DNA of 64,000 nt from positions 1 through 64,000 of IMG/VR virus record IMGVR_UViG_3300024262_006558. One strand, given 5' to 3'. The notes beneath the pieces were generated by a model, which was given only the letters and a program-made list of their open reading frames with translations, was not told where the DNA came from and did no database searches. A program made the translations under genes and the position numbers. Numbering within the stretch: position 1 is the first letter of the stretch; every line of letters starts with the position of its first letter. This document shows positions 14,526 through 57,885 of the stretch, piece after piece.

Positions 14526-17066
14526 CTACGAGCCGCATGCTTCGCAATCTTCCCCATTTTGCATTGCCTCGATGGAACAACTTATTGCCTCCTCTTCAGT
14601 ATAAACCTTAGCTTCAACCTTCTTAGTGTCAACTGTGAATTTAACCGCATCAGCTGCAGCTTTCGTCCTTAAGTAATACATTCCAGTCTTCAAAGCACTC
14701 TCTGGAGTCTTGCCATACTTGGCTTTGTTTTCCAAAAGACTTTTTTGTTTTACAATATCTCCAGATAACTCACCTTCTATTTTAGAAATTTCTTCTAAGA
14801 ACAGATCTAATTCTTCCTGAGCTCCTTCTGATACTGTTACTCCCCCTCCCCATCCAAAGAAATGCATGGCAGTTAAACTACCAAAATTTGGTTGAGCCAT
14901 GTGAATATTCATTGACTGAGTTTGATCTATATAAGCTCCTCTTCCAGCGTACATGTTGATGATGTCCTTTTGAGAAATCTCCCAAGTAGTTCTATACTTG
15001 TGTTTTAGATTTTCAGGGATTTCATCGATAGCTTGAACGCTACCATTATTAGACATTATCTGACTTTTAATCCCATTACTCCATATGCCAAGATCACACA
15101 ACTCTCTAACCAAGTGTTTGTTAACAATGATGAACTCACCGCTTAAAACTCGTCTTAAATACATATTGCTTTGCTGAGCTTCAGCTGCAGCTTCATTTCC
15201 AAATATACTAGCTGTAGAAGCGGTAGGCATTGAACATGTTGTTAAAGAGTTTCTTAGACCGTATTTTATTATGTCCGCTCTTAACCCTTCCCAATCATAC
15301 CTATCAGATGGAGTTACTCCCCACATGTCAAATTGTAATATGCCTTCAGATGCTGGAGATCCTTTGAATGTGCTGTATGACCCTTCTTTCTTAGCAAGAT
15401 CATTAGACGCTTTTAAAGAAGCGTAATATATTGTTTCGTATATTTTCTTATTCAAATCTGCAGACTTAGCGTCACCATATGACATATCCATTAAAAAGAA
15501 TACATCAGCTAAACCTTGAGTTCCTAAACCGATTGGTCTATGCTTAAAGTTTGAATTACTTGCAGTCTCTACAGGGTAGAAATTAATATCAATAACTTTA
15601 TTCAAGTTTATTGTCGCTCTATAAGATACTTGCTCTAATTTTTCGAAGTCAAACTTCTTATTTTTTCTACCTTTAACAAAATTAGGAAGACAAATACTAG
15701 CAAGATTACAAACGGCAGTTTCTTCTGGAGATGTAAATTCAATTATCTCAGCACATAAATTTGAACACTTGATTGTACCTAGATTCTTTTGGTTTGACTT
15801 AACGTTACACGCATCTTTATAAAGCATATAAGGGCCGCCAGTCTCCATTTGAGACTCTAACATTTTAGTCCAAAGCTCTCTAGCTTTAATCTTTCTAATG
15901 TACTTACCTTCAGCTTCATATTTTTCATACAACTCAACAAACTTTTCAGAATAAACCTCATCTAAACCAGGGCATTCTTTAGGGTCCATTAAAGCCCAGT
16001 CTTGATCGTTCTCCACTCTTTGCATGAACAAGTCAGGTAACCACATTGCATAGAACAAATCTCTTGCTCTCATTTCTTCTTTACCATGATTTTTCTTCAT
16101 TTCCAATAAATCGAAAATATCTCCATGCCATGGCTCTATATAAATAGCAATTGACCCTTTTCTCTTGCCTCCACCTTGATCTACATATCTAGCAGTCTCA
16201 TTGAACACCTTAAGCATAGGTACAATTCCATTCGAAGTCCCGTTAGTCCCTTTTATGTAAGACCCTTTAGTTCTTATATTGTGTATACTTAAGCCTATAC
16301 CTCCAGCCGATTGAGAAATGTCTGCGCATTCAGATAAGGTATCGTAAATACCTTTTATTGAATCATCCTTTGCTTGAAGTAAAAAACAGCTAGACATCTG
16401 AGGCTTATTGGTTCCAGCGTTGAATAATGTTGGGGTAGCATGTGTGAAATACTTTTCAGTCATCATGTCGTAAGTCTCCAGAGCGCTCTCTATGTCGTTT
16501 CCATGAATGCCTATAGCAACTCTCATGAATACATATTGAGGGGTCTCAGTAATTTCTAGAGCTTTCTTCTTCTCATTATATGTTTTAAGTAAATAGCTCT
16601 TCTCAAGAGTCTTGTACCCGAATATATCAAAAGTAAAATCTCTTGACTTTATGATTGCAGAATTTAATTCGTCCGAGTTTTCTACTACTGTTTTATAATA
16701 TTCTTCAGATACTAGTGGAGCTCTTTCTCCAGTTTCTGGATCAATGTTGTTGTAAAGTTTGTCAGTTGCTTTTGAGAAACTTCTTTCAGTTGTCTTGTGT
16801 AAAGATGATATCGCTAACCTTCCAGCTAACACCGCGTAATCAGGGTGTTGTGCAGTAAGAGCAGCCGCAGTCTCTACAGCTAAATTATCTAATGCTTCAG
16901 TAGTTACTCCATCGTAAATACCTTCAATAACTTTCTTGGCAATATCAAAAGGCTTTATCCAACTTGGATCCAACTTATAAGATTGCTTTTCTATTCTAGA
17001 AAGAACCTTTTCCAATTTCACAGGCTCTTTCTTTCCAGTCCTTTTAGTTACATAAACTTCGTTCAT
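14526..17066 (-). CDS. nrdA: Ribonucleotide reductase class Ia alpha subunit with N-terminal ATP cone
   Basis: VTKRTG ATP cone, ATPTLFNAG, SSCFL, SNLCAEI, MPTAST, KTGMYYLRT, C-terminal CEAC. Confidence 0.97.
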   Translation of the reverse strand: MNEVYVTKRTGKKEPVKLEKVLSRIEKQSYKLDPSWIKPFDIAKKVIEGIYDGVTTEALDNLAVETAAALTAQHPDYAVLAGRLAISSLHKTTERSFSKATDKLYNNIDPETGERAPLVSEEYYKTVVENSDELNSAIIKSRDFTFDIFGYKTLEKSYLLKTYNEKKKALEITETPQYVFMRVAIGIHGNDIESALETYDMMTEKYFTHATPTLFNAGTNKPQMSSCFLLQAKDDSIKGIYDTLSECADISQSAGGIGLSIHNIRTKGSYIKGTNGTSNGIVPMLKVFNETARYVDQGGGKRKGSIAIYIEPWHGDIFDLLEMKKNHGKEEMRARDLFYAMWLPDLFMQRVENDQDWALMDPKECPGLDEVYSEKFVELYEKYEAEGKYIRKIKARELWTKMLESQMETGGPYMLYKDACNVKSNQKNLGTIKCSNLCAEIIEFTSPEETAVCNLASICLPNFVKGRKNKKFDFEKLEQVSYRATINLNKVIDINFYPVETASNSNFKHRPIGLGTQGLADVFFLMDMSYGDAKSADLNKKIYETIYYASLKASNDLAKKEGSYSTFKGSPASEGILQFDMWGVTPSDRYDWEGLRADIIKYGLRNSLTTCSMPTASTASIFGNEAAAEAQQSNMYLRRVLSGEFIIVNKHLVRELCDLGIWSNGIKSQIMSNNGSVQAIDEIPENLKHKYRTTWEISQKDIINMYAGRGAYIDQTQSMNIHMAQPNFGSLTAMHFFGWGGGVTVSEGAQEELDLFLEEISKIEGELSGDIVKQKSLLENKAKYGKTPESALKTGMYYLRTKAAADAVKFTVDTKKVEAKVYTEEEAISCSIEAMQNGEDCEACGS

Positions 17067-41002: not shown

Positions 41003-41893
41003 TTAGTTAGAAGTAAAAGATTGAGTTTGCGTTAAAGACTTAATATCTGTATTCTGATTATTCTGAGGCGTGTTAGCCAACTTCTCTTGTTCAGCTTTTT
41101 GGTCTTCTAAATCTTTTTCCATTTGAGTTATTTGTTCCAACTCTTCTTCAGCTTGATCAAACTGAGCTTTTTTAGCTCTCTTCTCTTCTGGCTGCTCTGA
41201 AGGAACTACATCCTTAACTCTCTTAAGAAACTTAACCTTCTCTTCCGTATTGCCTTTCATATTATCAAGACTCACTTCCATGTCAGTGAAATAAGCTTCT
41301 ATTTCTTCCTGTATTATTTTATGAATCTCATTCACTGAGTTATCTTTTTCTTCTGAAAAATCCTCTACTTTAGTTATTGAAATCTGGTCATTAAACCACG
41401 CTATGTATATCCTTTGATTTCCTCCCCAATTTGGATCTTTAGCCACAATGCTATCATAGCCAAACTTATCCCTCATCATAGTATAGAATTCATTGATGTT
41501 ATAAGGAGAGCTTCTGAAAATTTCATTAATAACATCAATGTCATCCTCATTGTTTTCATCCAATACCCTAGCTGATGTATCTAAAACTGATTCATACCCT
41601 TCATAGCTTACATCCCCATAATTAGAAAGAAATCCATCACCGCTTTCATCAAACACTCTAAGCATTTCTACTATGTCATCGTACTTAAGAATTCTCTTTC
41701 CAATAAAGAATGGCTTATTAAAAGTTAGATTTACTTGATAAAGAAAACCTCCATTGGCATATCCTTTTGCTATATTGTAATCGCTGGTAAAATAGAAACC
41801 ATAACCTTCCATAGTAGCATTAGCTCCTATCTTTTCATAATCCCATTTATCGAGTTTATGAGGTCCTCCGTGATATGCTTTAATTTGTGTCAT
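41003..41893 (-). CDS. ADP-ribosyltransferase-like (ART-PolyVal-like) domain protein with acidic C-terminal tail
   Basis: AYHG...EGYGFYFT...AKGYA...LYQVNL...KFGYDSIV...DQI pattern. Confidence 0.6.
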   Translation of the reverse strand: MTQIKAYHGGPHKLDKWDYEKIGANATMEGYGFYFTSDYNIAKGYANGGFLYQVNLTFNKPFFIGKRILKYDDIVEMLRVFDESGDGFLSNYGDVSYEGYESVLDTSARVLDENNEDDIDVINEIFRSSPYNINEFYTMMRDKFGYDSIVAKDPNWGGNQRIYIAWFNDQISITKVEDFSEEKDNSVNEIHKIIQEEIEAYFTDMEVSLDNMKGNTEEKVKFLKRVKDVVPSEQPEEKRAKKAQFDQAEEELEQITQMEKDLEDQKAEQEKLANTPQNNQNTDIKSLTQTQSFTSN

Positions 41894-42369
41894 TATTTTA
41901 ATAGTCTTGTAAAACGTTTTTTTTGAACTTCGTAATCCTTTTTGAGGTCAGATTCCCATACTCTATAAAGGGTGTATCCCATACCTTCAGCTAATCTATC
42001 TTTATATTTATCATTTCTAACAATCCTTTCCTGCATTCTACTTCTCTTAGTATACTGTTCTGGATTTGCATGAAAGTAATCACCATCAACTTCTACTAGT
42101 ATATGTTTAGATGGGATATAATAGTCATATATTTTAGTTTTTAAAACTTTTTGAGGTATAAATTCAACACCTATTTCTCCTAGTAGCTCCTCAAACCTTT
42201 GCTCTGGCCATGTTTTATCCTTCACCATTCTAGCCGCCTGAGCTTCAACATATTTTTGCTTCTCAAGAGGTGTTCGCTTTCTTCTCCTAGCTGACTTTTT
42301 AACCTTTTTTAAAAGACTGTTTACTTTCTTGCTTCTTTTTTTCATCCCCCTTTTAGTTAGACAATTCAT
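41893..42369 (-). CDS. DUF559/Vsr-like endonuclease
   Basis: PEQRF...YDYYIPSKHILVEVDGDYFH...DKYKD...GYTLYRVWESD. Confidence 0.85.
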   Translation of the reverse strand: MNCLTKRGMKKRSKKVNSLLKKVKKSARRRKRTPLEKQKYVEAQAARMVKDKTWPEQRFEELLGEIGVEFIPQKVLKTKIYDYYIPSKHILVEVDGDYFHANPEQYTKRSRMQERIVRNDKYKDRLAEGMGYTLYRVWESDLKKDYEVQKKRFTRLLK

Positions 42370-44953: not shown

Positions 44954-45408
44954 GGCTTAAGAAAAGCTTGAGCCGATTTACCGCTCGCTAATTCATCAAC
45001 TCTATTATTAAAAGGATTAGTGGAATGCCCTTTCACGTGAGTAAAAGTGCAATTATGTTTTTCCACTAAAGAGCTCATCTCTTGCCACAAATCTTTATTT
45101 ATTACAGGCTTCTTAGCGCTGTTTATCCACCCCTTTCTTATCCATCCAGATATCCATCCCTGATTCATGCAGTTAACCACGTATGCGCTGTCAGACTTTA
45201 TTTCAATAACGGATCCAGGAGATCCGTTAAAATGTTTAAGTCCCTCTATGACGGCTAACATTTCCATCCTATTATTAGTAGTTGTTGCTGATTCACCCCC
45301 TGAAGATTCGTGTATAATTTCCTCAGCTTCATTTAAAACTAAGAACGCCCATCCACCTGGACCTGGATTACCTTTACAGGCTCCATCTGTATAAATTGTA
45401 TGTTTCAT
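44950..45408 (-). CDS. rnhA: Ribonuclease HI
   Basis: IYTDGACKGNPGPGGW, TTNNRMEM, SDSAYV, NKDLW, VKGHS, NNRVDELA. Confidence 0.96.
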   Translation of the reverse strand: MKHTIYTDGACKGNPGPGGWAFLVLNEAEEIIHESSGGESATTTNNRMEMLAVIEGLKHFNGSPGSVIEIKSDSAYVVNCMNQGWISGWIRKGWINSAKKPVINKDLWQEMSSLVEKHNCTFTHVKGHSTNPFNNRVDELASGKSAQAFLKP

Positions 45409-45417
45409 AATATCTTT

Positions 45418-45705
45418 TTAAAATCTTAATGATAAGTTTATTTGACCTTTTTCTAATAGCTTGCGTCTTTCAATTCGCAATCTACTTATACATGCTGCGC
45501 ATATATGATAGTTTTCTGAATTAGTTAATTCTTCAAAGATCTCAAAGAAACCCCCTTCGCTAGCAAGGCAATGATCGCAACTTTGGAAGTAGTCTCTAGT
45601 ACTGGAATTCGTATAACTATACGGAGATCTAGTGCTTAAGTGAGCTATATCCTTTAAGTTTCTAATTCTTCTTGGGTCGAAATAAAATAGCTTTCTTTGC
45701 CCCAT
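45418..45705 (-). CDS. Hypothetical protein with CxxC...CxxC
   Basis: TAATG stop-start overlap with DnaE-C. Confidence 0.65.
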   Translation of the reverse strand: MGQRKLFYFDPRRIRNLKDIAHLSTRSPYSYTNSSTRDYFQSCDHCLASEGGFFEIFEELTNSENYHICAACISRLRIERRKLLEKGQINLSLRF

Positions 45706-48092
45706 TACATTTGAGCAACCTCATCTATAGAAATCTGTTTTTTTCCACCAACTTCTTTCTTTCCAAAATTTAAAAACCCTGCATCATTCTTTTCTATCCT
45801 AGCTAGGTAAACACTATTCTTTTTCATGGACTTATAAAATATCTCAGCATCTTTACCAAACATCCTTAGAACTGTGTCCTTTACCCCGTCAGACACTTTA
45901 AGCACAAGCATGTTCTTACCGCCTTTAGTAGCGTCCATTCTTTTAGATTGTAAAATGAAATAGTAATCATCAACATCAACATATTCATTGATACTACTTA
46001 TCTCTCTACCCGCAGATTCAGTTATGATCTGTTTTATTTCTGTAGCTTTTTTGATATATGCTAAATCAACTCCGCACACATCCATAAACTCTTTATTCTT
46101 TTCAATATCGGTAGTCGCTACATAAGTATCCTCATTTGGCTTCAATTCTGATTCATAACTAGACGCTGAGAACAAGGTTAATTGTTTTGGATCAGCCTTC
46201 TTTCTCTTCTTTTTCTTAGCAAATAAATCACATAATTCTTCACGAGAATGAGACCAATCATCAAACACACCAGCTTTAACTGAGGCTTCGTATGGAGTCT
46301 TGCCAAACTTGCTAAAGTTAGCATCAAAGAAATGATATTTGGACACCGATTTAAAGTTAGTTTCTTTCTGAATTTTAAGAACTTCATTTAAATCACTATA
46401 TGCCGCATCACCCATACCATTAATCGCAGATAATCCCATTGATATTTCTTTTTCATCCGTAGTAGCCCATCTCCAAGAAGATTTTCTAGAAGGAGGTAGA
46501 ATATCTATACCTTTAGCTATAGCTGAAGATATTGCAGCATTTAACCATTCACGCTCCTTATCTTTACCTCCATTTGTCTTAGGGTGATTCAATAAAGAAG
46601 TGTAAAACTCTACTGGGTAATAATGTTTTAAATACAATGTTTGCATTGCCAAATAAGCATATGAAAGGGAGTGAGACTTGTTAAATGAATATCCTAAATA
46701 CTCGATCATCCATTCTTTAATCTTCTCTAAAGATTTTTCATCCATACCATTCTTAAGAGATCCATCCAAGAACATGTTCCAGTACTTTAAAAACCCTTTG
46801 TATGCTTTATTATCTTTTTCCTCTTCACTCAACGGAGGTCCCATAAACTCTCCATTTTCACCTTTCTTTCTAGAGGCTAAATCTTTCTGAATTAACTTAC
46901 TCGCCTTATCCATCGCACGTCTAAGTAAATCACCTTCACCTAAACTCATTCCAGCAAATTGATTTGCTATAAACATTACTTGCTCTTGGAAGATAAGTAC
47001 GCCATTACTTTCTGACAATATAGGCTCCAACCAAGGGTGTATATACTTAATCTCAGATGGAGCAAATTTATTTTTTATGTATTCACGATCAGCTCCGATA
47101 CCCATTGGACCTGGTCTAAATAACGCATTGGCCGCAACAAGTTCAGAAAACTTATCGATTCTTATCCCTTTAATCAATGAGTTCATACCAGCGGATTCAA
47201 ACTGAAAAATACCATGATTTAACCCAAGTCTCAACTCCTTATATAAATTAGCGTCTTCAATGTCAACATGATCCACTTTTTCCTGAACTTCTTTAAAGGT
47301 TTCTTCACCGTACTTAATCCGTATCAAATCAATAGCGTCCTTAATTACATTTAAAGTTTCAATCTTAAGACGGTCAAGCTTTAATATTCCTAAAGTTGAT
47401 AAATCCTTACCTGACTTGTCGGCCTCTTGAAAGGCCGTCACGATAGAATTCTCCTCACCCTTAGGCTTTGCTATAATATTAGTTGGAACATAGTTATAGC
47501 ATGGCCCTGGAGTTATTACAAGACCTGCCGCGTGCTGCCCTATACCTCTAATTTGCCCTTGAAGTTTAAGCGTGTGCTCTAATATGATCGCGTTCTCTGG
47601 ATCTGTCAACCAAGCCTTAACCCTAGTGCTGCACCCTGGATGTTCTGGATATTCCGTTAACCACTCTTCAAAAGAATCGTAATCTCCCAAACTTCCGCCC
47701 ATCTCTTTGGTGACCTGAAAAACTTCAGATTCAAAACCAGATGCTTCAGTTCCTTGATGAGCTTTTGTTACATCTTTAATACATCCTTTTTCATTGAATG
47801 TAGAGAATGTCCCTACGTTAAGTACTCTGTTTCTACCATACTTTTCATATAATATCTCATTCGTGACATGGTCTGTACCATTCATGAAGTCAATATCGAT
47901 GTCTGGCGGACTATTGTGTACTAAAATAGCCGTTTTTAAGCTGTTTTCACCGTTTTCTCCATTATTTATAAAGTCGATATCTATACAGTTTTTTGATGTT
48001 CCATAAAATAGATGGTCTTCATCAAAGGAAAGGTCATACACTTTACCTGAGTAATCGACTTTTCTAATATGTTTTATTTTACTTTTTTGCAT
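45705..48092 (-). CDS. dnaE: DNA polymerase III alpha, C-terminal half, preceded by 60-aa split-intein C part
   Basis: After VHN: SPPDIDIDF catalytic motif, GQHAAG, LKLDRL, GIFQFES, LIFQEQVM, GYSFNKSHS. Confidence 0.95.
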   Translation of the reverse strand: MQKSKIKHIRKVDYSGKVYDLSFDEDHLFYGTSKNCIDIDFINNGENGENSLKTAILVHNSPPDIDIDFMNGTDHVTNEILYEKYGRNRVLNVGTFSTFNEKGCIKDVTKAHQGTEASGFESEVFQVTKEMGGSLGDYDSFEEWLTEYPEHPGCSTRVKAWLTDPENAIILEHTLKLQGQIRGIGQHAAGLVITPGPCYNYVPTNIIAKPKGEENSIVTAFQEADKSGKDLSTLGILKLDRLKIETLNVIKDAIDLIRIKYGEETFKEVQEKVDHVDIEDANLYKELRLGLNHGIFQFESAGMNSLIKGIRIDKFSELVAANALFRPGPMGIGADREYIKNKFAPSEIKYIHPWLEPILSESNGVLIFQEQVMFIANQFAGMSLGEGDLLRRAMDKASKLIQKDLASRKKGENGEFMGPPLSEEEKDNKAYKGFLKYWNMFLDGSLKNGMDEKSLEKIKEWMIEYLGYSFNKSHSLSYAYLAMQTLYLKHYYPVEFYTSLLNHPKTNGGKDKEREWLNAAISSAIAKGIDILPPSRKSSWRWATTDEKEISMGLSAINGMGDAAYSDLNEVLKIQKETNFKSVSKYHFFDANFSKFGKTPYEASVKAGVFDDWSHSREELCDLFAKKKKRKKADPKQLTLFSASSYESELKPNEDTYVATTDIEKNKEFMDVCGVDLAYIKKATEIKQIITESAGREISSINEYVDVDDYYFILQSKRMDATKGGKNMLVLKVSDGVKDTVLRMFGKDAEIFYKSMKKNSVYLARIEKNDAGFLNFGKKEVGGKKQISIDEVAQM
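47913..48092 (-). mobile_element. Split intein C-terminal part (IntC, 60 aa)
   Basis: Own ATG; block F VYDLSFDEDHLFY; block G ILVHN followed by Ser+1. Confidence 0.92.
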
Positions 48093-49140
48093 CTATAATT
48101 CTTTTAACTCTATCTATAACTAACTTCTGATTATCTTTCCAGTCTTTTTCCCAAATCTCAACGTAAGTACAGCTATATTCTTTCTCTATCAAAGATACCT
48201 TTACCTCTTCTTCTTTCCAAATGTCTTGAGCTATCTTTTTTTTATGCTTATGAAAATAATCATGACTATAAATATCTGGATTGCAATGCCAATAATCCCC
48301 TTGAATCTCTATTACTATATTATATTCTTTATTAAAAAAGTCTACTCTATAATTCCTTTTAGTGTCATAATTAATAAAGTTCGCCTGTTTATTTCCTGAT
48401 GCGTAATAAAATGAATCTTTAATTTCAGGAATCTTAACCAATTCTTTTACTACTTGTATTTCCAGATTTGAAACTCCTCCAGAAAAATTTGCTCTATTTT
48501 CATTTTGCCATTCATCAGAGTAAAACAAATTCTCAACCCCATATTTTATCATCATAGAATCGGTTACTGCTGAATAGTGAGAGCCTCTATTTAGAAATGA
48601 ATCATGACCGTATCTCTCATTCATGGTGGAAACAATCTTTTTATGTATATTTGGAGATTGTATTGGAGCCCTTAACCCAGTTGTGCCTAAGTTTTTATTT
48701 AAAGTCTTTCCGTATTTTTCTCTATACTCTTTTGTTTTATAATAAAGCGACTTGTATTCCTTTTCTCTAAGAGGGTGCCCTAATTCATAGAAATACTTCC
48801 CTCCTCTAGCTGGGTGTAGCTCTAAAACACTTTCCTTATCCAGGAATTTATCATAGTACTTAACTTTTAAATTAGAAAGACTTTCAAGTGACCCATCTTC
48901 CATCTGAAGTTTAATAACCCATCTCCCTCTATGTTTTGCATGAACCACAGAATCGACTGTATCTCCAGAGATCGTTTCCAATCCAATAAATGATGAAAGT
49001 GACACATTTAGAGGTGTCTTATATTTCCATATGTCTAAATCAGCCTGAGTTGGATCTATAAAGCCATAAAACTCTTTTATAGCTTTGTCTAGATCTTTTT
49101 TGGTGTCAAAATTATTACTTAGTAAATATTCTTTTGTCAT
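48079..49140 (-). CDS. Free-standing Vsr/DUF559-like (putative homing) endonuclease between the dnaE halves
   Basis: RYG/KYGVEN repeats; SNLE...VDFF...IEIQGDYWHCNP...EIWEKDW. Confidence 0.85.
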   Translation of the reverse strand: MTKEYLLSNNFDTKKDLDKAIKEFYGFIDPTQADLDIWKYKTPLNVSLSSFIGLETISGDTVDSVVHAKHRGRWVIKLQMEDGSLESLSNLKVKYYDKFLDKESVLELHPARGGKYFYELGHPLREKEYKSLYYKTKEYREKYGKTLNKNLGTTGLRAPIQSPNIHKKIVSTMNERYGHDSFLNRGSHYSAVTDSMMIKYGVENLFYSDEWQNENRANFSGGVSNLEIQVVKELVKIPEIKDSFYYASGNKQANFINYDTKRNYRVDFFNKEYNIVIEIQGDYWHCNPDIYSHDYFHKHKKKIAQDIWKEEEVKVSLIEKEYSCTYVEIWEKDWKDNQKLVIDRVKRIIDAKK

Positions 49141-49155
49141 AATGAAATCTTTATC

Positions 49156-49182
49156 TATAAATAGGTAAGGATTTTATAAATA
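49156..49182 (-). promoter_or_regulatory. Two tandem TATTTATA motifs upstream of the endonuclease
   Basis: Copies at 49156-49163 and 49175-49182. Confidence 0.55.
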
Positions 49183-49500
49183 TTAAATTTTGGGAATGCC
49201 TTTCCATAATTTAACATTTACAAACTCTCTATTTTGATCTTGGAATGATTCTGTCAGTGAGTTATAGTAACACATTTCAACTGTTATGTATTCATCTCCT
49301 ATATTGGCTCCTAAAACATCTTCTTGATACACTCTTTTTACTACACATAGAAAACTACCTTGATACGATCCGTTATCAATAAGTTCACCTTCTTCATTTA
49401 AACCATCCAATGGTATGTGTGTTTTAAAATTCTCCCACTTATCCATAGAAGTAGAAGTTGTGTTTATTTTATCTGGTTCTCTAATTTCAAATTTTTCCAT
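49183..49500 (-). CDS. Hypothetical passenger protein inside fractured dnaE
   Basis: 105-aa ORF, no nuclease or intein motifs seen. Confidence 0.7.
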   Translation of the reverse strand: MEKFEIREPDKINTTSTSMDKWENFKTHIPLDGLNEEGELIDNGSYQGSFLCVVKRVYQEDVLGANIGDEYITVEMCYYNSLTESFQDQNREFVNVKLWKGIPKI

Positions 49501-49563
49501 TTTAAAATTTCAATTTATCTGATATGAACCCTTTTTTAGACCCAACTAATTCTTGAATAAATT

Positions 49564-51765
49564 TTATTTAACAAACAAAATATCAGTTTCTAAAATATCA
49601 TCCACCCTTATCTCCATTCTTTCACCCTCTCTTTCTACGGGAACTATATGATTACCAGTTAACTTAATTACAGCACCATCCTCTGTTTCTATTTCATAAA
49701 CAGATTCATCCGCCCCAATCTCTCTCACATGCATCTGAACTAACTCTCCTTTACCTGTTGATGTTTCTACTGGATCACCTACTTCAAGGTCTACCACGCT
49801 TTTATAAGTGCCATCTTTCATCAAAACTGTACAGTCATCAGTAAGGCAATCTCTAGATGGATTCAAGAAACGCTCGAAATATAAATCAAACCTAATTGGA
49901 TCAATCTTAATAATATCAAGGCACCAAGAGAGCAAGCTTCCTGCGGCAGATCCACGCGCAGGACCGATGTCATATCCCCTCTTTCTATATTCTCTAATTA
50001 TCTCCCAATTAACCAAGAAATAATCAAGCATCTTCTTTGACTCAATTACTTCAAGCTCATACTCTAATCTATCAAAGTACTCCTTCATTTTCTCTTCAGT
50101 CATTTCAACTATACCACTCTTTTTATAGTAGCCTAGTTTTTGTTTTAATTTAGCATGAGCTAATTTAGTTATTATACCTTTAGTGGTAGTTTCCTTGAAG
50201 TAATCTAAAACATCTTGAGTAGGTTCGTATTGAGGATATTTCTCAACACCAATTTCGAAATCATAATTACATTTACTAGCAATCTCTAAAGTGTTATCTA
50301 AACATATATTAACAAAACTCTCAGGATAGTTGAAATCTCTATCAGAATTTAGTTTTTGGAAATCAGCGCGTCTAAAATAGTACATCTTTCTATTCTCTTT
50401 CAAGAAAGCATTATCTATAGACGTTCTCTGTTTGATAGATGTGACTACATCTTGCAAAACAGCATCTTCCTCTTTAGGGTAGAAAGTGTCATTTGTAAGT
50501 ATTGGCTTTACATTGTAATACTTCATCATTTTAATCATGAATACATTGTAAGCTCTTTGTTGAGAAGAACCGTTAAATTGTAATTCAATATAAAAATCTT
50601 CCCCAAACTCTTTTTCAAACTTCTGAAACAACTGTTCAGCTTTTCTTTCTTCACCCCTTTGTACTAAGTGGGAGAATACGCTATCCTCGGAAGAAGTTGT
50701 AACTATTAAACCTTCTTTGTGCTTAAGTAACCATTCAGTTTTAATTCTACCTTTTTGGTAATAACCTTCAGTGTTCGCCTTATAAAGAAGTAGATTCAGA
50801 TTTTTATAACCTTCTTCATTCTTTATATATATTTTTTGCTTAAATGATTCCCCTTGAGCTCTTCCCTCTTCTACATCACCAATTTTCTCATTAAGATAAA
50901 GGTCTATTCCTAATATAGGTTTTATACCAGCCTCTTTACATGCTTGGTAAAATTCGAAAGTACCAGACATTGTAGAGGAATCGGTGATAGCCATAGACTC
51001 ATGACCATACTCCTTTGCTATCTTAATGTAATCTTTAACTGATCCAGCCCCCTCAAGTATAGAGTGGAATGTATGTAAGCATAGTGGAACAATTGGGCGC
51101 TCTCCGCCTTCGGATTCTTTTTTGTCGGCTTTTTCAAGCATCTCTTGAAGAGATGCTTCAACATCAACTTCTTCGTAATCTCCTGAATAATTAAACCAAC
51201 CGATCTCTTGAAGCTTGAAGAAACATTTAGCTAACGCCTCAACATCTACAAGTGCATCATGGGCATCTTGGAAAGCTGTATTAAATAGTTTTAAATATAA
51301 CTCACTTAAAGTAGGCCATTTATATCCACCACCTCTCTTTTTGGGAACCTTACAGAAATCTACAGTAGTGTTTTTTGTACATATATGCCTAATCTTCTGT
51401 ACAAAATTAGGCATACCTAAACGAGTATACTCACATCCCACAATTTTTTCATCAAAAGAAATATTGTGAGCAATAAGATATCTAGACCCTTGAAGATCTT
51501 CCGAGAACATATTAAGAGCTACTTCTAGATCTATACCTTCTTGTTCTGCTCTCTCTGTTGTGACCCTGTGTATATTGGACGCTTCTATCGGTATTGTATA
51601 ACCATCAGGCCTGATAACAATGCTTTCAGTTTTTATACAATTATAATCCTTATCATAAACCTTCCATGCAATTTGGACCATTCTTGGCCAATTGTCAAAG
51701 TCAGTTAATGGAGCGTTATATTTTTTTGGAAGACCTGTAGTCTCCGTATCAAATACTATATACAT
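49564..51765 (-). CDS. dnaE: DNA polymerase III alpha, N-terminal half (DEDDh exonuclease plus PHP), followed by 94-aa split-intein N part
   Basis: MYIVFDTETTGLPK, AHNISFD, HDALVDV; PHP CLHTFHSILEG...MAITD; GPARGSAAGSLLSWCL...FERFLNPSRD then CLTDD. Confidence 0.95.
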   Translation of the reverse strand: MYIVFDTETTGLPKKYNAPLTDFDNWPRMVQIAWKVYDKDYNCIKTESIVIRPDGYTIPIEASNIHRVTTERAEQEGIDLEVALNMFSEDLQGSRYLIAHNISFDEKIVGCEYTRLGMPNFVQKIRHICTKNTTVDFCKVPKKRGGGYKWPTLSELYLKLFNTAFQDAHDALVDVEALAKCFFKLQEIGWFNYSGDYEEVDVEASLQEMLEKADKKESEGGERPIVPLCLHTFHSILEGAGSVKDYIKIAKEYGHESMAITDSSTMSGTFEFYQACKEAGIKPILGIDLYLNEKIGDVEEGRAQGESFKQKIYIKNEEGYKNLNLLLYKANTEGYYQKGRIKTEWLLKHKEGLIVTTSSEDSVFSHLVQRGEERKAEQLFQKFEKEFGEDFYIELQFNGSSQQRAYNVFMIKMMKYYNVKPILTNDTFYPKEEDAVLQDVVTSIKQRTSIDNAFLKENRKMYYFRRADFQKLNSDRDFNYPESFVNICLDNTLEIASKCNYDFEIGVEKYPQYEPTQDVLDYFKETTTKGIITKLAHAKLKQKLGYYKKSGIVEMTEEKMKEYFDRLEYELEVIESKKMLDYFLVNWEIIREYRKRGYDIGPARGSAAGSLLSWCLDIIKIDPIRFDLYFERFLNPSRDCLTDDCTVLMKDGTYKSVVDLEVGDPVETSTGKGELVQMHVREIGADESVYEIETEDGAVIKLTGNHIVPVEREGERMEIRVDDILETDILFVK
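49567..49848 (-). mobile_element. Split intein N-terminal part (IntN, 94 aa)
   Basis: Cys1 CLTDDCTVLMKDG block A; block B KLTGNHIV; ends ETDILFVK-stop. Confidence 0.92.
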
Positions 51766-51789
51766 GGATTGTTATTTTTACTTAGATAA

Positions 51790-51797
51790 CAAAAATA
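51790..51797 (-). promoter_or_regulatory. -7 element TATTTTTG upstream of dnaE-N
   Basis: TAnnTTTG match 24 nt upstream of ATG. Confidence 0.45.
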
Positions 51798-51832
51798 TGC
51801 AATCCACTTATGATTTACAAGAAAAACTTGTA

Positions 51833-52099
51833 TTATGATTTGTGAAGATCTAAATTTCTTTTTACAACTAAGAAAAAAGAAATTATTATAAATGATGCAA
51901 ATAAAGCTATAGGGGGGAAGTTTAAAAACCAATACACCACGGAAGTCATAAGAAAATGACTAAAACCCGCCATCAATCCATAGTTGACCACTTTATACGT
52001 AGCTTTGTTTTCTTTAATATAATGAGCCCCAGCCATAATAAAGCCGAATAACATTAAAAAAACAGGTACAAGTAATGCGATTGTGATAATATTGTTCAT
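51833..52099 (-). CDS. Small membrane protein
   Basis: Three hydrophobic segments. Confidence 0.65.
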   Translation of the reverse strand: MNNIITIALLVPVFLMLFGFIMAGAHYIKENKATYKVVNYGLMAGFSHFLMTSVVYWFLNFPPIALFASFIIISFFLVVKRNLDLHKS

Positions 52100-52229
52100 A
52101 GTAATTAAGTTTTAGTTTCAATTACTATAACGAAGATCTTCTTATAATGTTTCCATAATGGAAACTTATTTTTTACAAGCTCATCTTCAAGAGGGGCGTA
52201 GGGCGATTTTTAAATATTATATTTTAGCA

Positions 52230-52469
52230 TCAATAGTCATTTTCACTATCTTGCCTCTGACATAAAATCCCTTTTCTTAAATCTTCACAAAGCTTTCTAA
52301 CCTCATTAATCTTACCCCTAGCTCTTATACTAGCTCGTCTACCTGTTTTGGATCTCAAGAATTTAGTGACATCCGCATCGGCGGAGTCAACTAATTCCTT
52401 TAAGTATTCCCAGTTTTGTCTGATTTCATAAAAATCAGTTTCCACTATTTCTTTCTTAGGCCTCCCCAT
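52230..52469 (-). CDS. Histone H1-like Hc1 family protein
   Basis: Likely start MGRPKKE at 52469; LKELVDSADADVTKF...ASIRARGKINEVRKLCEDLRK matches the Hc1-family pattern. Confidence 0.7.
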   Translation of the reverse strand: MGRPKKEIVETDFYEIRQNWEYLKELVDSADADVTKFLRSKTGRRASIRARGKINEVRKLCEDLRKGILCQRQDSENDY

Positions 52470-55400
52470 CGTCTCTTTTGAATGAAGATTTTTCCCCCTT
52501 AAGCTTGTTGATAGAATCAAGCCTGTCCATAACATCTCTAGCTTTATTAGCTATTTGCTCACTTTCTTTTTGAAGTTTACCGTCTGATATTTCAATTTCC
52601 TCAATTTCTTGAATCACTCTCTTCTTTGCAGGCTTTTTCTTAACAACCTCGAACTCTCCTTCAGACTCAGTTTCAACTTCATTTTCTTGAGACTTTATTC
52701 TTTCATCTATTCTATTAATCATTCCACTCATTTTTCTACTAGCAGCAGATATCAAAATGTGATTTTCAAACAGTTTATTCTCTTTACTTATATCGTTTTC
52801 CTCTTCACCTTTTAAAGTGTGCTCCATAAGTTCTTCGTAGAAATTGTCAAATCTATCATCGGAAGCTTTTAGCAATTTATGAAGTCTGCCTCTCTTTATT
52901 TCAGCTAAGTCTCCAACAGGCTCTTCAGTTGGGCCATCATCTATTCCAGCCGCTCCAAGATCTGCTCCTAAATCACCTTCCAGATCACCACCTCCAGCAG
53001 CATCTAAATCACCGTCTAAATCATCGATGCCAGCATCCATTCCCCCTCCAGCAATATCCCCGTCAAATCCGCCTCCGAATCCTCCAGCTCCACCGTCACC
53101 AAGACCTTCCTCGCCTCCTTCTCCAGGAGTCTGTATAGCCGCATGAGGGTTTTCATACTTTTTATCAAGATCTTTAAATAACCCGATTTTCTTATATGAT
53201 TCCGCTGCAGATTCAATTTCCATGAATAGTTTCTTCTCAACTTTCTTCTGCTTCAAGATAAGTTTGATCTCTTCTTTAGAGAATCCCATAACATTCTCCA
53301 TAGCCCATGTATATGAAGCTGGAGACATTCCTTCTGGAGTAAACATTTGAGAGAAAACTTCTAACTTAGATTTCCACGTCTCCATGTTCAACAATACTTG
53401 TTGAGTAGAAGGGTTAGTAAGTTGCAAATCGAAATTATCTATATCATCTTCAAACCCTAAGAATAATAAGTGAATATTAGCTATTCTTCTTAATTCCATC
53501 AACACACACTCCTGTATCATGTTAATAGTTCTTGCGAACCTTAAATCAGATTGAGACAATAAACTTCCACCTGGAATAGATTCCGTGTAGTTCAAATAAG
53601 GTTTTGGAACCTTAATTGCAGCAAACAATTTATTTTGAAGATATTCAATATCCATGATATCACCAAGATTTGTTGCCCCTGGTAAAGTATCAATCTTTGA
53701 AGACTTATCTCCCCTAACTGGTATGAAGTAATCTTCTTCAACACTAGGGGGGTTGTATTTTCTATTTGAGTTTCCGTTTCTTGAATCTACGACTGGCTGT
53801 CTTTTAAGACGAGTTTTGATATCTTCAATATATTGTAAAACGTCAGCATCATCTATGTTTCCTACATCAATGTAGAACACTCTACGTTCTGGAGCTCTAA
53901 CAATACGATATACAAGCATTGCATCTTCTGCAAGCTGTAATTGTTTCCAAAGTTTTCTAGCTGGATCTAATACCGATCTACCATAAGGTAATCTACGAGT
54001 GTCTTCAAGTAATCTGAAATGGGCAATTTGCCAATCTTCAAATATCATTCCTTGAGTGTCCCATCTGAATCTGGTTCTTCCTGGCTCACCTTCAACGCCT
54101 TCTTCTCTATGAATTTCTTCAGAAGGCAAGGCTAGTACATCAAAAATACCATATTCTTTATCAATGTGTAAATGTAAAAAGAAATCTCCATATTTACACA
54201 AATCTCTAATCCACAACCTCATGTTAAATTCAACATTCAATCGTTTCTTAAGAAGATCATTCAACACTTCTTTAACTCTTTTGTTAGGGGAGAAGATCTC
54301 AAGGATATTACCTCTCTCATTTCTGGTCAAGCAATTGTGAGTGAAAACACCAGTTCCATTTGAGGTTAGAATGGCGAAATTATGATGCTCGCCCACATTA
54401 ACTAAATCATAAGTCTTCCTTTTACCAACAAACTCAACAGATTTAATTGAATGGTTTGTCGCAGACACAAAATTGGTCCAATTTTTATATTCAGATCTTG
54501 ACAATAAGCCTTCAATTTCTTTTCTAGAAATATCATTATCTCTACAAATTTTAGATAAATTTGGCCTTTCACCTTGTGAAGAAAGATATAAACTCTTTAT
54601 ATAATTTAATCTTTCTTTTTTAGAATTATATTTTTTTACAAAATCAGTCCATTTGCCATATCCATTTTTCTCAAGATATGTATTAACCTTTTTTGGTCTC
54701 CAATTAAAATCATCACATATTTTTGACATATTATTCTCAAGAATAATTTGTCCTAAATAATTTTCACACGCTCCCTCTATTGCTTGTATAGATATTTTGC
54801 TATTGTGAAACCCTAAATCCTCCCACCTTTGTAAATTTAAAGATTTATATACTTTTGATTTATACAGAATTCTTCTAGTAGTTCCAAGAATCTCACAAGC
54901 CTCTTCGACTGTTGATGAATTATTATACGCTTGCAATAATTCATGAATAGAAAATTCTCTTTTTTTATCATGAAGATATCTTCCATTTTTTTCTCCAGAC
55001 AATCTATACCCTTTACCATACATAGGGTTTTCTTTTCCTGAATAACCAAATAAATCTTTTAATTCTTCTTGAGAATAATTTGAGTATTTTCTTTTTTGTC
55101 TGTCAGAAATTTCTTGGACTCTTTTAGATCTCCATTCTGGATCGCTCCAATATGGACCTGAAGAAGAATTTGTTTCAGAAAACACTTTTTTCATCTTATC
55201 TGAATAACTCTTGTCATTTTTCCACCTGTCAGAATTAAGAGAGCTATGAAGCTTTTGGTGATCAAACCAATCCATGACCTGAAGATTGGATGGATCATTA
55301 TTTAGTTTATTAAAATCCTTATGGTGAACAACTCCTTTTTTCTCTCCCCAAAGACTACGTTTAACAATTCTATGCGTATATTCCCATTTACCATCTTCAA

Positions 55401-56097
55401 AAACCATCTCATAACCACTTATTCTATCACCATCTCCAGATGCTCTAGTATAAAACGGTTGTATTGATTGGCTCTCTTTGAGATCTGATGTTTTTATATA
55501 TTTGTCTTCACCATTAGAAAGCCATAAATGTTCTGAAGTAGCCATTACGTGAGAATCATCATCAAACGTCACTTTATACACATCTTGTTCGCCTTTATAT
55601 ATGACTCTTTGACATATAGCTGGCTCACTTCTCTGTAATTCAGGATTATATGAATAAACATGGAAATTTTCCATATTTTCATCATATAGCTCTTCTATTG
55701 TTTTTCTTTCCCCACTTAAAAGCGGGATTACAGTATTTGCATCCAAGCATTCATCCCTCATGATGTCAAGCGCTGCCGCTATCTCAGGGGATTGGTCCAT
55801 AGCCCTAAAGTCTTGATAGGATGTTATTCTATCCGCATCAAAATACATAGTTCTCGTATACAAGTCTCTAGCTATTGAGTCTACTTGCCAATCAAGGAAC
55901 TGTTGTTGTTGCTGCTCTCTAGGGTCTTGATATCTATAAAATCTATCGTCACCTTTCTTCCCAGAGCCATTATCCTGACTTGGAGTGTGCCCTACTGGGG
56001 CTTGTGTGTATTCCTTTTCTCCAGGATCTCTAGGATCTGGCTTGAATCGTTGTGCAACTCTTTGAAATATTGTTTTTTGTGCGTTATTATCTGCCAT
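52456..56097 (-). CDS. Portal vertex protein (T4 gp20-like) with intein
   Basis: [13 protein letters not shown], RIWIR-like [62 protein letters not shown], DIEY. Confidence 0.95.
   Translation of the reverse strand: [1213 protein letters not shown]
54334..55749 (-). mobile_element. Intein (472 aa) with HNH endonuclease in portal
   Basis: [10 protein letters not shown] ... ATSEHLW ... [16 protein letters not shown] ... [14 protein letters not shown] ... [10 protein letters not shown]. Confidence 0.95.
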
Positions 56098-56133: not shown

Positions 56134-57885
56134 TTAATCTAGTAACCAACTTAGATCATTGTCCTCTTCAGCCGCCTGCGTGGCAGCGTCCTTAGATAAA
56201 TAGATGGGTTTCATATTTGACTTATGCTTCTCATCAAATTCTTTTGTTTTCTTTTTAGTGTGTTGTCTATCTGCCTCAGAAGAACCTTTACCATCATAAG
56301 GGTTCTGGCTATAGCTTATAGCTCCAAGCATTGCTTTATACAAGTTTCTCCCCTCTACAGCTTTCTCCCAAACATATTCTTTAATATAACAAACAATAGC
56401 GAATGCTATCAAAAGGTCATCATGACTTCCTGATTCATGCTCAATTTTACCATTGGGCTTTTGAACAAATGTCTCCATTTCTATAACCACTCTAGGCGAA
56501 TTAAGCGTAACTACTTTTTCTGATAAATATTTCTTAAGAGCGCTAATTAATAAAGGTCTTGTTTTTGGCGTGGTCTGAAACCCTGGCACCACTTCATTTT
56601 CAACCACTTTAAATCTAGAATCTCTAGGCCCAGTCCAAGTCTCTCTATAAGCTGAAGCTTTATGGACTCTTTTGTATCCTAAATTCTTATGCAACTCATA
56701 ACAAGTTGCTGATCCCATATTATTAAACTCAATAGCAACGTAAGCTTCATTGTAAACCATTCCTACAGCATATATTACATGAGCTAATTCGTGAGCGTCT
56801 AATTTCTTATGATACTCAGCCACTTGAATCATATCTATAGCTTCAAATACTTGTATAGTAGAGTAATCCTTTCCATCTCCACGCGCAACATCTGATGCAA
56901 TTATGTACTCGCAACCTTCAACTGGCTTATGATATACCCAGAATGAATTTTTATCCTTAACAAAAGGATCCTCACCTTCTTTATGCTTCTTCTCATCAAA
57001 ATAACAAATAGGTTTAGTTCCATTAGTTTGTTGAGCATAATATTTCCTAACCCTATCTGGGATAACGGTGGCCTTCGAACCTTCAAAAGATAAATCAAGC
57101 TCTTGAGCAATTTTTACCTCATCTCTATGTAATTGATTACATATCTCTTCATACCAAGGGCTCCAATACCTAGTGGTTCCATCGTCTTGAGCTCTAAGCT
57201 CAAGACCCTGAGCACAGTAAGGATTGTCTTTCCAGTGTACAACGCTTCTACAGAACTTATTCTGTCCCTTGATAGAAGATTGCCAAGTTTTATAGTAATA
57301 GCCTGAGGTACCGTTAGGTGTCGAAATAATGATAGTCTTACCACCAGTTCTGGATACAGCAAGACCAGCTCCCATATTGATTTGATCCGCATGTTCAATA
57401 AAAGCTGCTTCATCCAAAATCAACATTGTCAAAGAATCCCCACGACCAGCGTCTGGAGAAGATGCCACAGCCTTAATGCTTGATCCATTAGAAAATGTAA
57501 GTTCGTTTTGATTATCCTTAAGCCTAGCTTCAGGCATTAAGAATGGAGGCGTGTTATTAATATATTGTTTAACTGTTTCTAGGAATCTTTTCGCTCCTTT
57601 AAAATCATTGGCAATAATTAGTATTCTTTGATCGTGTTTAAATAAAGCCGCCCATGCAACATATCCAGCGGTAGCAACCGATAAACCTGTTTGCCTACTT
57701 TTTAGTATAATGTTATTTTGATACTTGTTAAACTTGTAGATTACTCTCTTTTGGTATTCATATGGGGAAAACTTTGAAAGCTCACTTGTATCCGCATCGA
57801 AAATAACTCCGTAATTCTCCAGGTAATATATCGGATCAGCCATGCATTTGGCCAACTCTAATTCTTCGTAGGTAAGTTCAGACAT
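56134..57885 (-). CDS. terL: Terminase large subunit (T4 gp17-like)
   Basis: LKSRQTGLS, LILDEAAF, ISTPNG, QELDLSF, ASDVARGDGKDYS, IEFNNMG, HDDLLIA. Confidence 0.96.
   Translation of the reverse strand: MSELTYEELELAKCMADPIYYLENYGVIFDADTSELSKFSPYEYQKRVIYKFNKYQNNIILKSRQTGLSVATAGYVAWAALFKHDQRILIIANDFKGAKRFLETVKQYINNTPPFLMPEARLKDNQNELTFSNGSSIKAVASSPDAGRGDSLTMLILDEAAFIEHADQINMGAGLAVSRTGGKTIIISTPNGTSGYYYKTWQSSIKGQNKFCRSVVHWKDNPYCAQGLELRAQDDGTTRYWSPWYEEICNQLHRDEVKIAQELDLSFEGSKATVIPDRVRKYYAQQTNGTKPICYFDEKKHKEGEDPFVKDKNSFWVYHKPVEGCEYIIASDVARGDGKDYSTIQVFEAIDMIQVAEYHKKLDAHELAHVIYAVGMVYNEAYVAIEFNNMGSATCYELHKNLGYKRVHKASAYRETWTGPRDSRFKVVENEVVPGFQTTPKTRPLLISALKKYLSEKVVTLNSPRVVIEMETFVQKPNGKIEHESGSHDDLLIAFAIVCYIKEYVWEKAVEGRNLYKAMLGAISYSQNPYDGKGSSEADRQHTKKKTKEFDEKHKSNMKPIYLSKDAATQAAEEDNDLSWLLD

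Follow-up and report, generated by a model that had tools for sequence, protein, structure and literature searches.

How might a phage obtain an intact replicative polymerase from a dnaE gene whose two halves are separated by other genes? This question is raised by a fractured dnaE locus at positions 45705-51765, minus strand, of a 64,000-nt stretch of DNA (positions 1 to 64,000 of the IMG/VR virus record IMGVR_UViG_3300024262_006558, referred to here as the window). A preliminary description of the window, made from its letters and open reading frames (ORFs), had proposed that the polymerase halves carry the two parts of a naturally split intein and are rejoined by protein trans-splicing, and each feature that it placed between these coordinates was found there on the minus strand. 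The phage contig bearing the window is 388-494 kb in size, and the locus is complete within it. We conclude, with a probability of about 0.88, that the locus is the replicative polymerase gene of a jumbo phage in fractured form, in which a class-1 mini-intein is split by a cassette for a free-standing endonuclease of the EDxHD/Vsr-like type, with an extra DUF551-like ORF to the upstream side of the cassette.

Two polymerase halves and a split intein

As had been claimed, the N-piece ORF (49564-51765; 733 amino acids, aa) runs through the N-terminal part of DnaE to ...FERFLNPSRD and continues directly into a Cys-led 94-aa intein half (IntN) and a stop codon. The C-piece ORF (45705-48092; 795 aa) begins with its own Met, the only candidate start, which opens a 60-aa intein half (IntC) that ends in LVHN and is followed by SPPDIDIDF. 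The intein halves are separate ORFs about 1.47 kb apart, with the IntC ATG located 1471 nt downstream of the IntN TAA stop, and the 2 genes that had been placed between them are present as ORFs of 105 and 353 aa; all 4 ORFs of the locus lie on the minus strand.

Searches with Pfam profiles matched the N piece to RNase_T (aa 3-182), PHP (aa 230-396) and DNA_pol3_alpha (aa 533-643), and the C piece to DNA_pol3_alpha (aa 60-242), DNA_pol3_finger (aa 246-399) and HHH_6 (aa 528-620). The N piece carries the first 100 positions of the DNA polymerase III (Pol III) alpha catalytic domain, and the C piece resumes at position 99 of that profile. With the NCBIfam profile PRK05673, the N piece covered positions 7-399 and the C piece positions 400-710, and therefore the break is a clean one, in which nothing of the polymerase has been lost.

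We have compared the 2 halves with an uninterrupted allele, as the preliminary description had proposed. The flanking polymerase segments (exteins) of 639 and 735 aa add up to 1374 aa, which is the length of the uninterrupted ortholog, P0017; the identity is 79% both for the N-extein (residues 1-639 of P0017) and for the C-extein (residues 640-1374), and the joined extein DNA aligned with the P0017 gene over 4125 nt with zero gaps. The predicted product, a replicase of about 1374 aa with the junction RD-SPPDIDIDF, agrees with this ortholog throughout its length. The P0017 gene itself is located in a syntenic contig (L109), in the order terminase, portal, 2 small genes, DnaE, a 94-aa gene, RNase H and a cupin gene.

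Intein blocks A, B, F and G, as well as the Ser+1 residue, are all present in the window, so that the residues expected of a naturally split, class-1 Cys1/Ser+1 intein were found, as had been claimed, with the halves in separate ORFs. Cys1, which is Cys640 of the N-piece ORF (TGC, 49848-49846), directly follows ...NPSRD and is kept in all 13 alleles. Block B reads TGNH (aa 703-706 of the N-piece ORF); its T64 and H67 are invariant in a 9-allele alignment, and both are present in each of the 13 IntN sequences. In IntC, which aligns with 22 other alleles, block F is VYDLSFDEDHLFY and block G is ILVHN, followed by Ser+1 (AGT, 47912-47910), and the HN-S arrangement occurs in 23 of 23 IntC sequences. 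IntN is 94-97 aa long in the 13 alleles examined (94 aa in 11 of them) and IntC 48-62 aa across alleles. The prediction of an acidic IntN and a basic IntC N-terminus was borne out by net charges of -14 for IntN and +4 for the first 20 residues of IntC.

IntN matched the Pfam Hint family above its cutoff (expectation value, E=8e-9) and also TIGR01445 (intein_Nterm). IntC alone is too short to give a significant match. A profile built from 9 IntN alleles matched solved Hint domains at E=6e-7, the gp41-1 intein weakly at E=0.011, and the DnaE intein 7qil at E=0.21. Because the profile recognizes Hint domains so clearly and gp41-1 so weakly, the intein of the window is, judged by its sequence, a distinct lineage. 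The same intein was found at the same dnaE site in >20 other metagenomic or viral loci and protein clusters, and the ratio of nonsynonymous to synonymous change (dN/dS) between IntN alleles was approximately 0.03-0.15, near the extein value of 0.06, although dS is saturated (>1), so that these values are rough. Recurrence of the halves at one site in >20 independent loci, together with dN/dS in this range, puts the assignment as a split intein far beyond chance. When 185,579 genomes of bacteria and archaea were scanned with this profile of IntN, zero relatives were found, and the family appears to be restricted to phage and metagenome contigs.

In its genomic arrangement, its short length and its oppositely charged halves, the window intein is similar to gp41-1, NrdJ-1 and IMPDH-1. 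It differs from them in its host gene and in the distance of its relationship to gp41-1 noted above, and those 3 inteins are characterized biochemically, whereas the window intein is known from sequence. Cys1/Ser+1 is the usual combination among phage-type split inteins such as these. The preliminary description had put the locus forward as a candidate new Cys1/Ser+1 pair, distinguished by an extended IntC and by 2 intervening ORFs. The residues for this chemistry are present, as are the extended IntC and the second ORF, but the novelty was overstated in each respect: Cys1/Ser+1 is common in phage inteins, every allele at the site has a long IntC, and other loci (L021/L105 and L100) also have a second ORF.

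The window intein resembles the cyanobacterial split DnaE intein (Ssp/Npu) in that it is naturally split, resides in the Pol III alpha subunit and is predicted to rebuild that subunit by trans-splicing. The cyanobacterial site lies before CFNKSH, with Cys+1, whereas the break in the window lies before SPPDIDIDF, with Ser+1, and the FNKSH region (residue 470 of the C piece) is uninterrupted; the junction therefore differs from the cyanobacterial one, as had been noted. Also, in cyanobacteria the 2 halves are encoded far apart, with no endonuclease gene accompanying them (PMC2677866), whereas those in the window are close neighbors. Identity with the cyanobacterial intein was ruled out by the intact FNKSH, by the 1.47-kb spacing and by the lack of meaningful similarity to the cyanobacterial type (7qil, as above).

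There is one unusual element in IntC. In this family, blocks F and G are set apart by a loop of 12-25 additional residues (about 22 in the window), and in the window this loop includes the sequence IDIDFINNG, which echoes DIDIDFMNG of the C-extein, 24 residues downstream. Of 200,000 shuffled versions of the loop, 11 reached an exact 5-aa match (IDIDF), and an IDIDF-type motif is located at the same loop position in the diverged alleles P0005-P0008, P0002, L099 and L028. The echo is not a recent DNA duplication, because the codons of the 2 motifs differ at synonymous positions; it may be the relic of an old duplication or a mimic at the protein level. A functional extein mimic, for example a stand-in for the missing palm strand that would hold the C fragment, before splicing, in a folded or an inactive state, or a gate on trans-splicing, is a speculative explanation to which we give little credence. 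If it were correct, the loop would represent a previously undescribed kind of intein-host adaptation, and the echo of a polymerase catalytic-strand motif is in any case a testable oddity.

The intervening genes and the upstream hairpin

The preliminary description had named a Vsr-like endonuclease as the known companion of split inteins in fractured genes. The 353-aa ORF gave no nuclease domain match in Pfam, and searches of the PDB with the sequence and with a 22-member profile detected neither Vsr nor I-Bth0305I (only a spurious QueH stretch was returned); matches were obtained to PHROG families annotated "homing endonuclease" and, over the N-terminal repeats, to DUF7487. In a model from AlphaFold2 (AF2; mean confidence score, pLDDT, 84), the protein has an N-terminal beta and helical region that is DNA-binding-like, followed by a Vsr-like nuclease domain at the C-terminus. 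Foldseek matched this C-terminal domain to Vsr (1cw0_A, probability 1.00; 1vsr, probability 0.99) and to the catalytic domain of I-Bth0305I (3r3p_B, probability 0.99; template-modeling score, TM, 0.74; root-mean-square deviation 3.3 A). Because the modeled fold matches both Vsr and the I-Bth0305I catalytic domain, the protein is placed in the Vsr-like/EDxHD homing-endonuclease family, as the model predicts. Candidate nuclease residues are D267, E278, D282, W284-H285, D311, E331 and D333. Across 22 relatives, D267, W284-H285 and E331 are invariant and D282, D311 and D333 nearly so.

All 15 of the non-self full-length relatives of this protein in IMG/VR (35-45% identity) occupy the dnaE site of the window, flanked by IntN and IntC, and more distant matches share the nuclease domain only. 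Since full-length relatives are confined in this manner to one site, the pattern fits a role of the N-terminal region in setting site specificity.

EDxHD (Vsr-like) endonucleases were first found in fractured genes (PMC2677866, PMC3239194), and their homing-endonuclease prototype is I-Bth0305I, encoded in a recA group I intron (Taylor et al. 2011, PMC3239194). The window protein resembles the prototype in its C-terminal nuclease fold and in a 2-part layout with an N-terminal DNA-binding region; it differs in having no sequence-level match to it, even by profile, and in its larger N-terminal region with DUF7487-type repeats.

The 3' end of the endonuclease gene overlaps the start of IntC by 14 nt (48079-48092). 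Its 5' side is preceded by an AT-rich hairpin, the 3' arm of which ends 5 nt before the endonuclease ATG, where a ribosome-binding site would be. The consensus structure derived from 9 loci has 11 pairs, 4 of which show compensatory changes. Single-sequence folding of 3 intergenic or overlap regions gave no significant structure in any of them. The insert as a whole (guanine plus cytosine content 0.28-0.29) is more AT-rich than most of the flanking dnaE (0.30-0.43 in windows of the extein sequence).

The other intervening gene, orf105, sits between the IntN stop and the hairpin, such that the interval from the IntN stop to the endonuclease gene consists of 63 nt, orf105 and 42 nt. Its sequence corresponds to the N-terminal ~100 aa in a family of phage proteins ~180 aa long: 12 non-self relatives were found at E<=1e-3 (the best at 5e-11), 10 of which are 174-193 aa long. 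All 11 invariant family residues are retained in orf105, and the C-terminal ~75 aa are lacking. Searches of Pfam, PHROG, NCBIfam and PDB folds gave no match; a structural atlas gave a weak lead to DUF551 clusters (TM 0.55/0.65). In all other loci of this dnaE site, orf105 is absent, and some of them have a different small ORF, unrelated to orf105, in the same position (110 aa in L021/L105, 115 aa in L100). Because these loci carry other small ORFs there, the second intervening ORF is a recurrent add-on and not special to the window locus, and we regard orf105 as a hitch-hiking gene or gene fragment.

Table 1. Positions of the parts of the fractured dnaE locus in the window
Feature	Position	Strand	Remarks
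DnaE N-extein, 639 aa, up to ...FERFLNPSRD	49849..51765	-	DEDDh proofreading exonuclease, PHP and first part of palm
IntN, 94 aa, starting at Cys1	49567..49848	-	Pfam Hint, TIGR01445; TAA stop at 49564-49566
orf105, small extra gene, 105 aa	49183..49500	-	DUF551-like (weak lead), between IntN and endonuclease cassette
AT-rich hairpin, 5' of endonuclease start codon	49145..49174	-	Comparative consensus structure, 9 loci
Putative free-standing homing endonuclease, 353 aa	48079..49140	-	Modeled C-terminal Vsr-like (EDxHD-type) fold
IntC, 60 aa, own ATG at 48092	47913..48092	-	Blocks F and G
IntC loop, aa 31-53, between blocks F and G	47934..48002	-	Holds IDIDFINNG
DnaE C-extein, 735 aa, from Ser+1, SPPDIDIDF with catalytic aspartates	45705..47912	-	Remainder of palm, fingers, helix-hairpin-helix

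Elsewhere in the window, a free-standing 158-aa DUF559/Vsr-like nuclease (41893-42369, minus strand) is weakly similar to the catalytic domain of the dnaE endonuclease; it adjoins a protein with an ART-PolyVal ADP-ribosyltransferase domain (41003-41893, minus strand). More Vsr-like nuclease domains were observed 2-5 kb downstream of dnaE in L004, L005, L006, L007, L008, L009 and L011. The presence of such domains downstream of dnaE in most related phage contigs suggests that other genes of this replication module have been invaded too.

Proposed pathway and alternative explanations

We propose the following pathway for the locus. The 4 genes would be co-transcribed, and the hairpin would limit translation of the endonuclease. 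The 733-aa DnaE-N-IntN and the 795-aa IntC-DnaE-C polypeptides would be drawn together by the opposite charges of their intein halves, acidic in IntN and basic in IntC; Cys640 would form a thioester, Ser+1 would attack it, and Asn60 of IntC would cyclize. The predicted product is the 1374-aa polymerase with a native RD-SPPDIDIDF junction, the intein insertion being located 3 residues ahead of PDIDIDF, the catalytic strand of DnaE. During mixed infection, dnaE alleles that lack the cassette would be cut by the endonuclease, and repair would copy the element into them; homing of this kind would account for the scattered distribution of the element among related phages. Cleavage of cassette-less alleles has indirect support in the patchy intein distribution and in the confinement of full-length endonuclease relatives to this dnaE site.

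Could the halves associate but no longer splice? In this case the intein would serve as a dimerization zipper only and the polymerase would consist of 2 non-covalently joined chains, as does the intein-less split NrdA of phage Aeh1. Examples of split genes that function although no splicing takes place are known (PMC2677866), and the unusual loop between blocks F and G of IntC could impair catalysis. However, Cys1, the T..H pair of block B, block F, HN and Ser+1 are conserved in every allele examined, with strong purifying selection, and a retained intein of 154 aa would sit within the active-site strand, given that the break is 3 residues before the catalytic aspartates; we consider loss of splicing unlikely. 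The notion of a decaying polymerase gene, broken by insertion of a mobile element in a phage that uses another polymerase, draws on the interruption of an essential gene by 2 foreign ORFs and on the truncated appearance of orf105 relative to its family. It is hard to reconcile with 2 halves that are both complete ORFs, free of frameshifts and indels relative to the ortholog over the aligned 4125 nt, and with an arrangement kept in many diverged phages, and we judge it very improbable.

An equally improbable explanation is that the halves are joined at the RNA level, by a group I or group II intron that carries the endonuclease ORF, and that the intein-like motifs are incidental. EDxHD endonucleases do occur in group I introns as well, I-Bth0305I in recA being an example. 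Yet a permissive Rfam search (E<=1) of 45000-52500 was empty, with no intron family or other match, and RNA splicing of the dnaE halves, which the preliminary description had named as the case that would speak against its proposal, was rejected on this basis. Also, the flanks of the insert form a genuine Hint domain in which the splicing residues are conserved, and a contiguous, in-frame version of the same intein occurs in another contig, L098.

It should be noted that several observations weigh against a fractured gene rebuilt by trans-splicing. The saturation of dS and the manner in which sequences were picked for the tree described below both soften the numbers concerned. The additional ~22 residues that IntC has between its blocks F and G, which are absent from characterized split inteins, could slow or modulate splicing. 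Single-sequence folding of the hairpin region of the window was not significant (z=-0.29), and scans of the locus for sigma-70 promoters and terminators gave counts no greater than the shuffled expectation, which is uninformative either way.

Allelic states at the dnaE site and related systems

Alleles at this dnaE site are found in several states. Empty alleles are present in L004-L007, L010, L011, L013 and L109. A contiguous mini-intein of ~146 aa is present in L098 (813-1250; Ga0136558_1016299), where it is in frame and has a short linker, KKNSTKE, exactly at the cassette position; L098 represents either an unsplit, ancestor-like state or a re-fused derivative. Many loci have the split intein with the endonuclease, and L003, L016 and others show the canonical fractured form. 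In L099 and L103 the split intein is present and the endonuclease is deleted, with a C-terminal remnant kept in L099. L103 (3700-4200) and L105 (3700-5300) have identical flanks, and L103 lacks ~1 kb, a deletion that takes in the last part of the 110-aa ORF together with most of the endonuclease gene, of which the last ~40 codons remain, and that leaves the split intein in place. L103 is thus a direct example of endonuclease loss through deletion.

In a tree of C-extein sequences, the window DnaE is the sister of an empty allele. The split or empty state changes at least 8 times on well-supported branches, no fewer than with shuffled labels, a count that is approximate because the sequences were picked by similarity to IntC and the junction and by a quick search. 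Since all predicted states occur at one site and are scattered on the tree, the series argues for a history of repeated gain by homing and loss by deletion.

A more extensive fragmentation of dnaE was observed in L100 (1-7279; JACCEA011321704.1) and also in L107, where the gene is broken at GPARG/SAAG, at the window's site and at YSFNK/C. The dnaE of these contigs is in at least 4 pieces, including a polypeptide of 164-166 aa in which a 34-aa extein is preceded by an IntC and followed by an IntN, and 2 of the 3 breaks hold 2 ORFs each. Assembly of this DnaE would need 3 orthogonal trans-splicing reactions.

Fractured genes were defined in 2009 by Dassa et al. from Global Ocean Sampling data, and their set included 3 dnaE loci (DnaE-1, -2 and -3), with split inteins at 3 sites that are all unlike the cyanobacterial site and with a Vsr-like endonuclease in DnaE-2 (PMC2677866). 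The hallmarks reported were 27-51 non-coding bases, a hairpin ahead of the endonuclease gene, and a 3' end of that gene that overlaps the IntC start by 6-69 bp; IntC lengths were 33-54 aa (PMC2677866). The window locus shares with those dnaE loci its host gene, a non-cyanobacterial site, a free-standing endonuclease between the halves on one strand, the hairpin before the endonuclease gene, the 3' overlap with the IntC start and a probable phage origin. In contrast to those loci, which are incomplete assemblies of reads, the window locus is complete; its insertion site may coincide with one of theirs. The canonical 27-51 non-coding bases are replaced in the window by 63 nt, the 105-aa ORF and 42 nt, and its 60-aa IntC, with the ~22-residue loop, exceeds the range of 33-54 aa reported in 2009. 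In phage Aeh1, the nrdA gene is split by mobE, and a hairpin and a late-promoter-like element control translation of the endonuclease (PMC2677866). In the window, too, an essential phage gene is divided by the gene for a free-standing endonuclease; the difference is that Aeh1 nrdA has no intein, its halves assemble non-covalently and its endonuclease is of the HNH type.

The window locus accordingly belongs to an established kind of element, since dnaE genes fractured in this way, by a split intein with a Vsr-like endonuclease, have been known since 2009 (PMC2677866), and current understanding of inteins or of phage replication is unchanged by it. In the literature we found no specific report on this insertion site or on a split DnaE of jumbo phages, and the whole 6 kb gave no blastn match among 50,697 GenBank phage records, so that the locus has no cultured relative there. 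The value of the locus is in other respects: it provides a candidate orthogonal split intein, predicted to be of the Cys1/Ser+1 type with halves of 94 aa (IntN) and 60 aa (IntC), and with >20 natural variants that could be used for consensus design, and the series of states at one site (empty, contiguous mini-intein, split with endonuclease, endonuclease deleted) matches predictions of the gene-breaking model of 2009 (PMC2677866).

Other observations concern genes elsewhere in the window. The gene for the large subunit of class I ribonucleotide reductase is a frequent target of inteins and endonucleases in phages; in the window (14526-17066, minus strand; 846 aa, with an ATP-cone) it is uninterrupted. 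The T4-like portal protein (1213 aa; 52456-56097, minus strand) contains a contiguous 472-aa intein (aa 117-588; 54334-55749), which has Cys1, an HNH endonuclease domain and a final HN, after which comes Cys+1. The portal protein of L109, at 741 aa, is without an intein, and the L109 terminase has a LAGLIDADG intein that is missing from the window terminase (56134-57885). Between the window and L109, there are then 3 intein sites, each of which is filled in one phage only.

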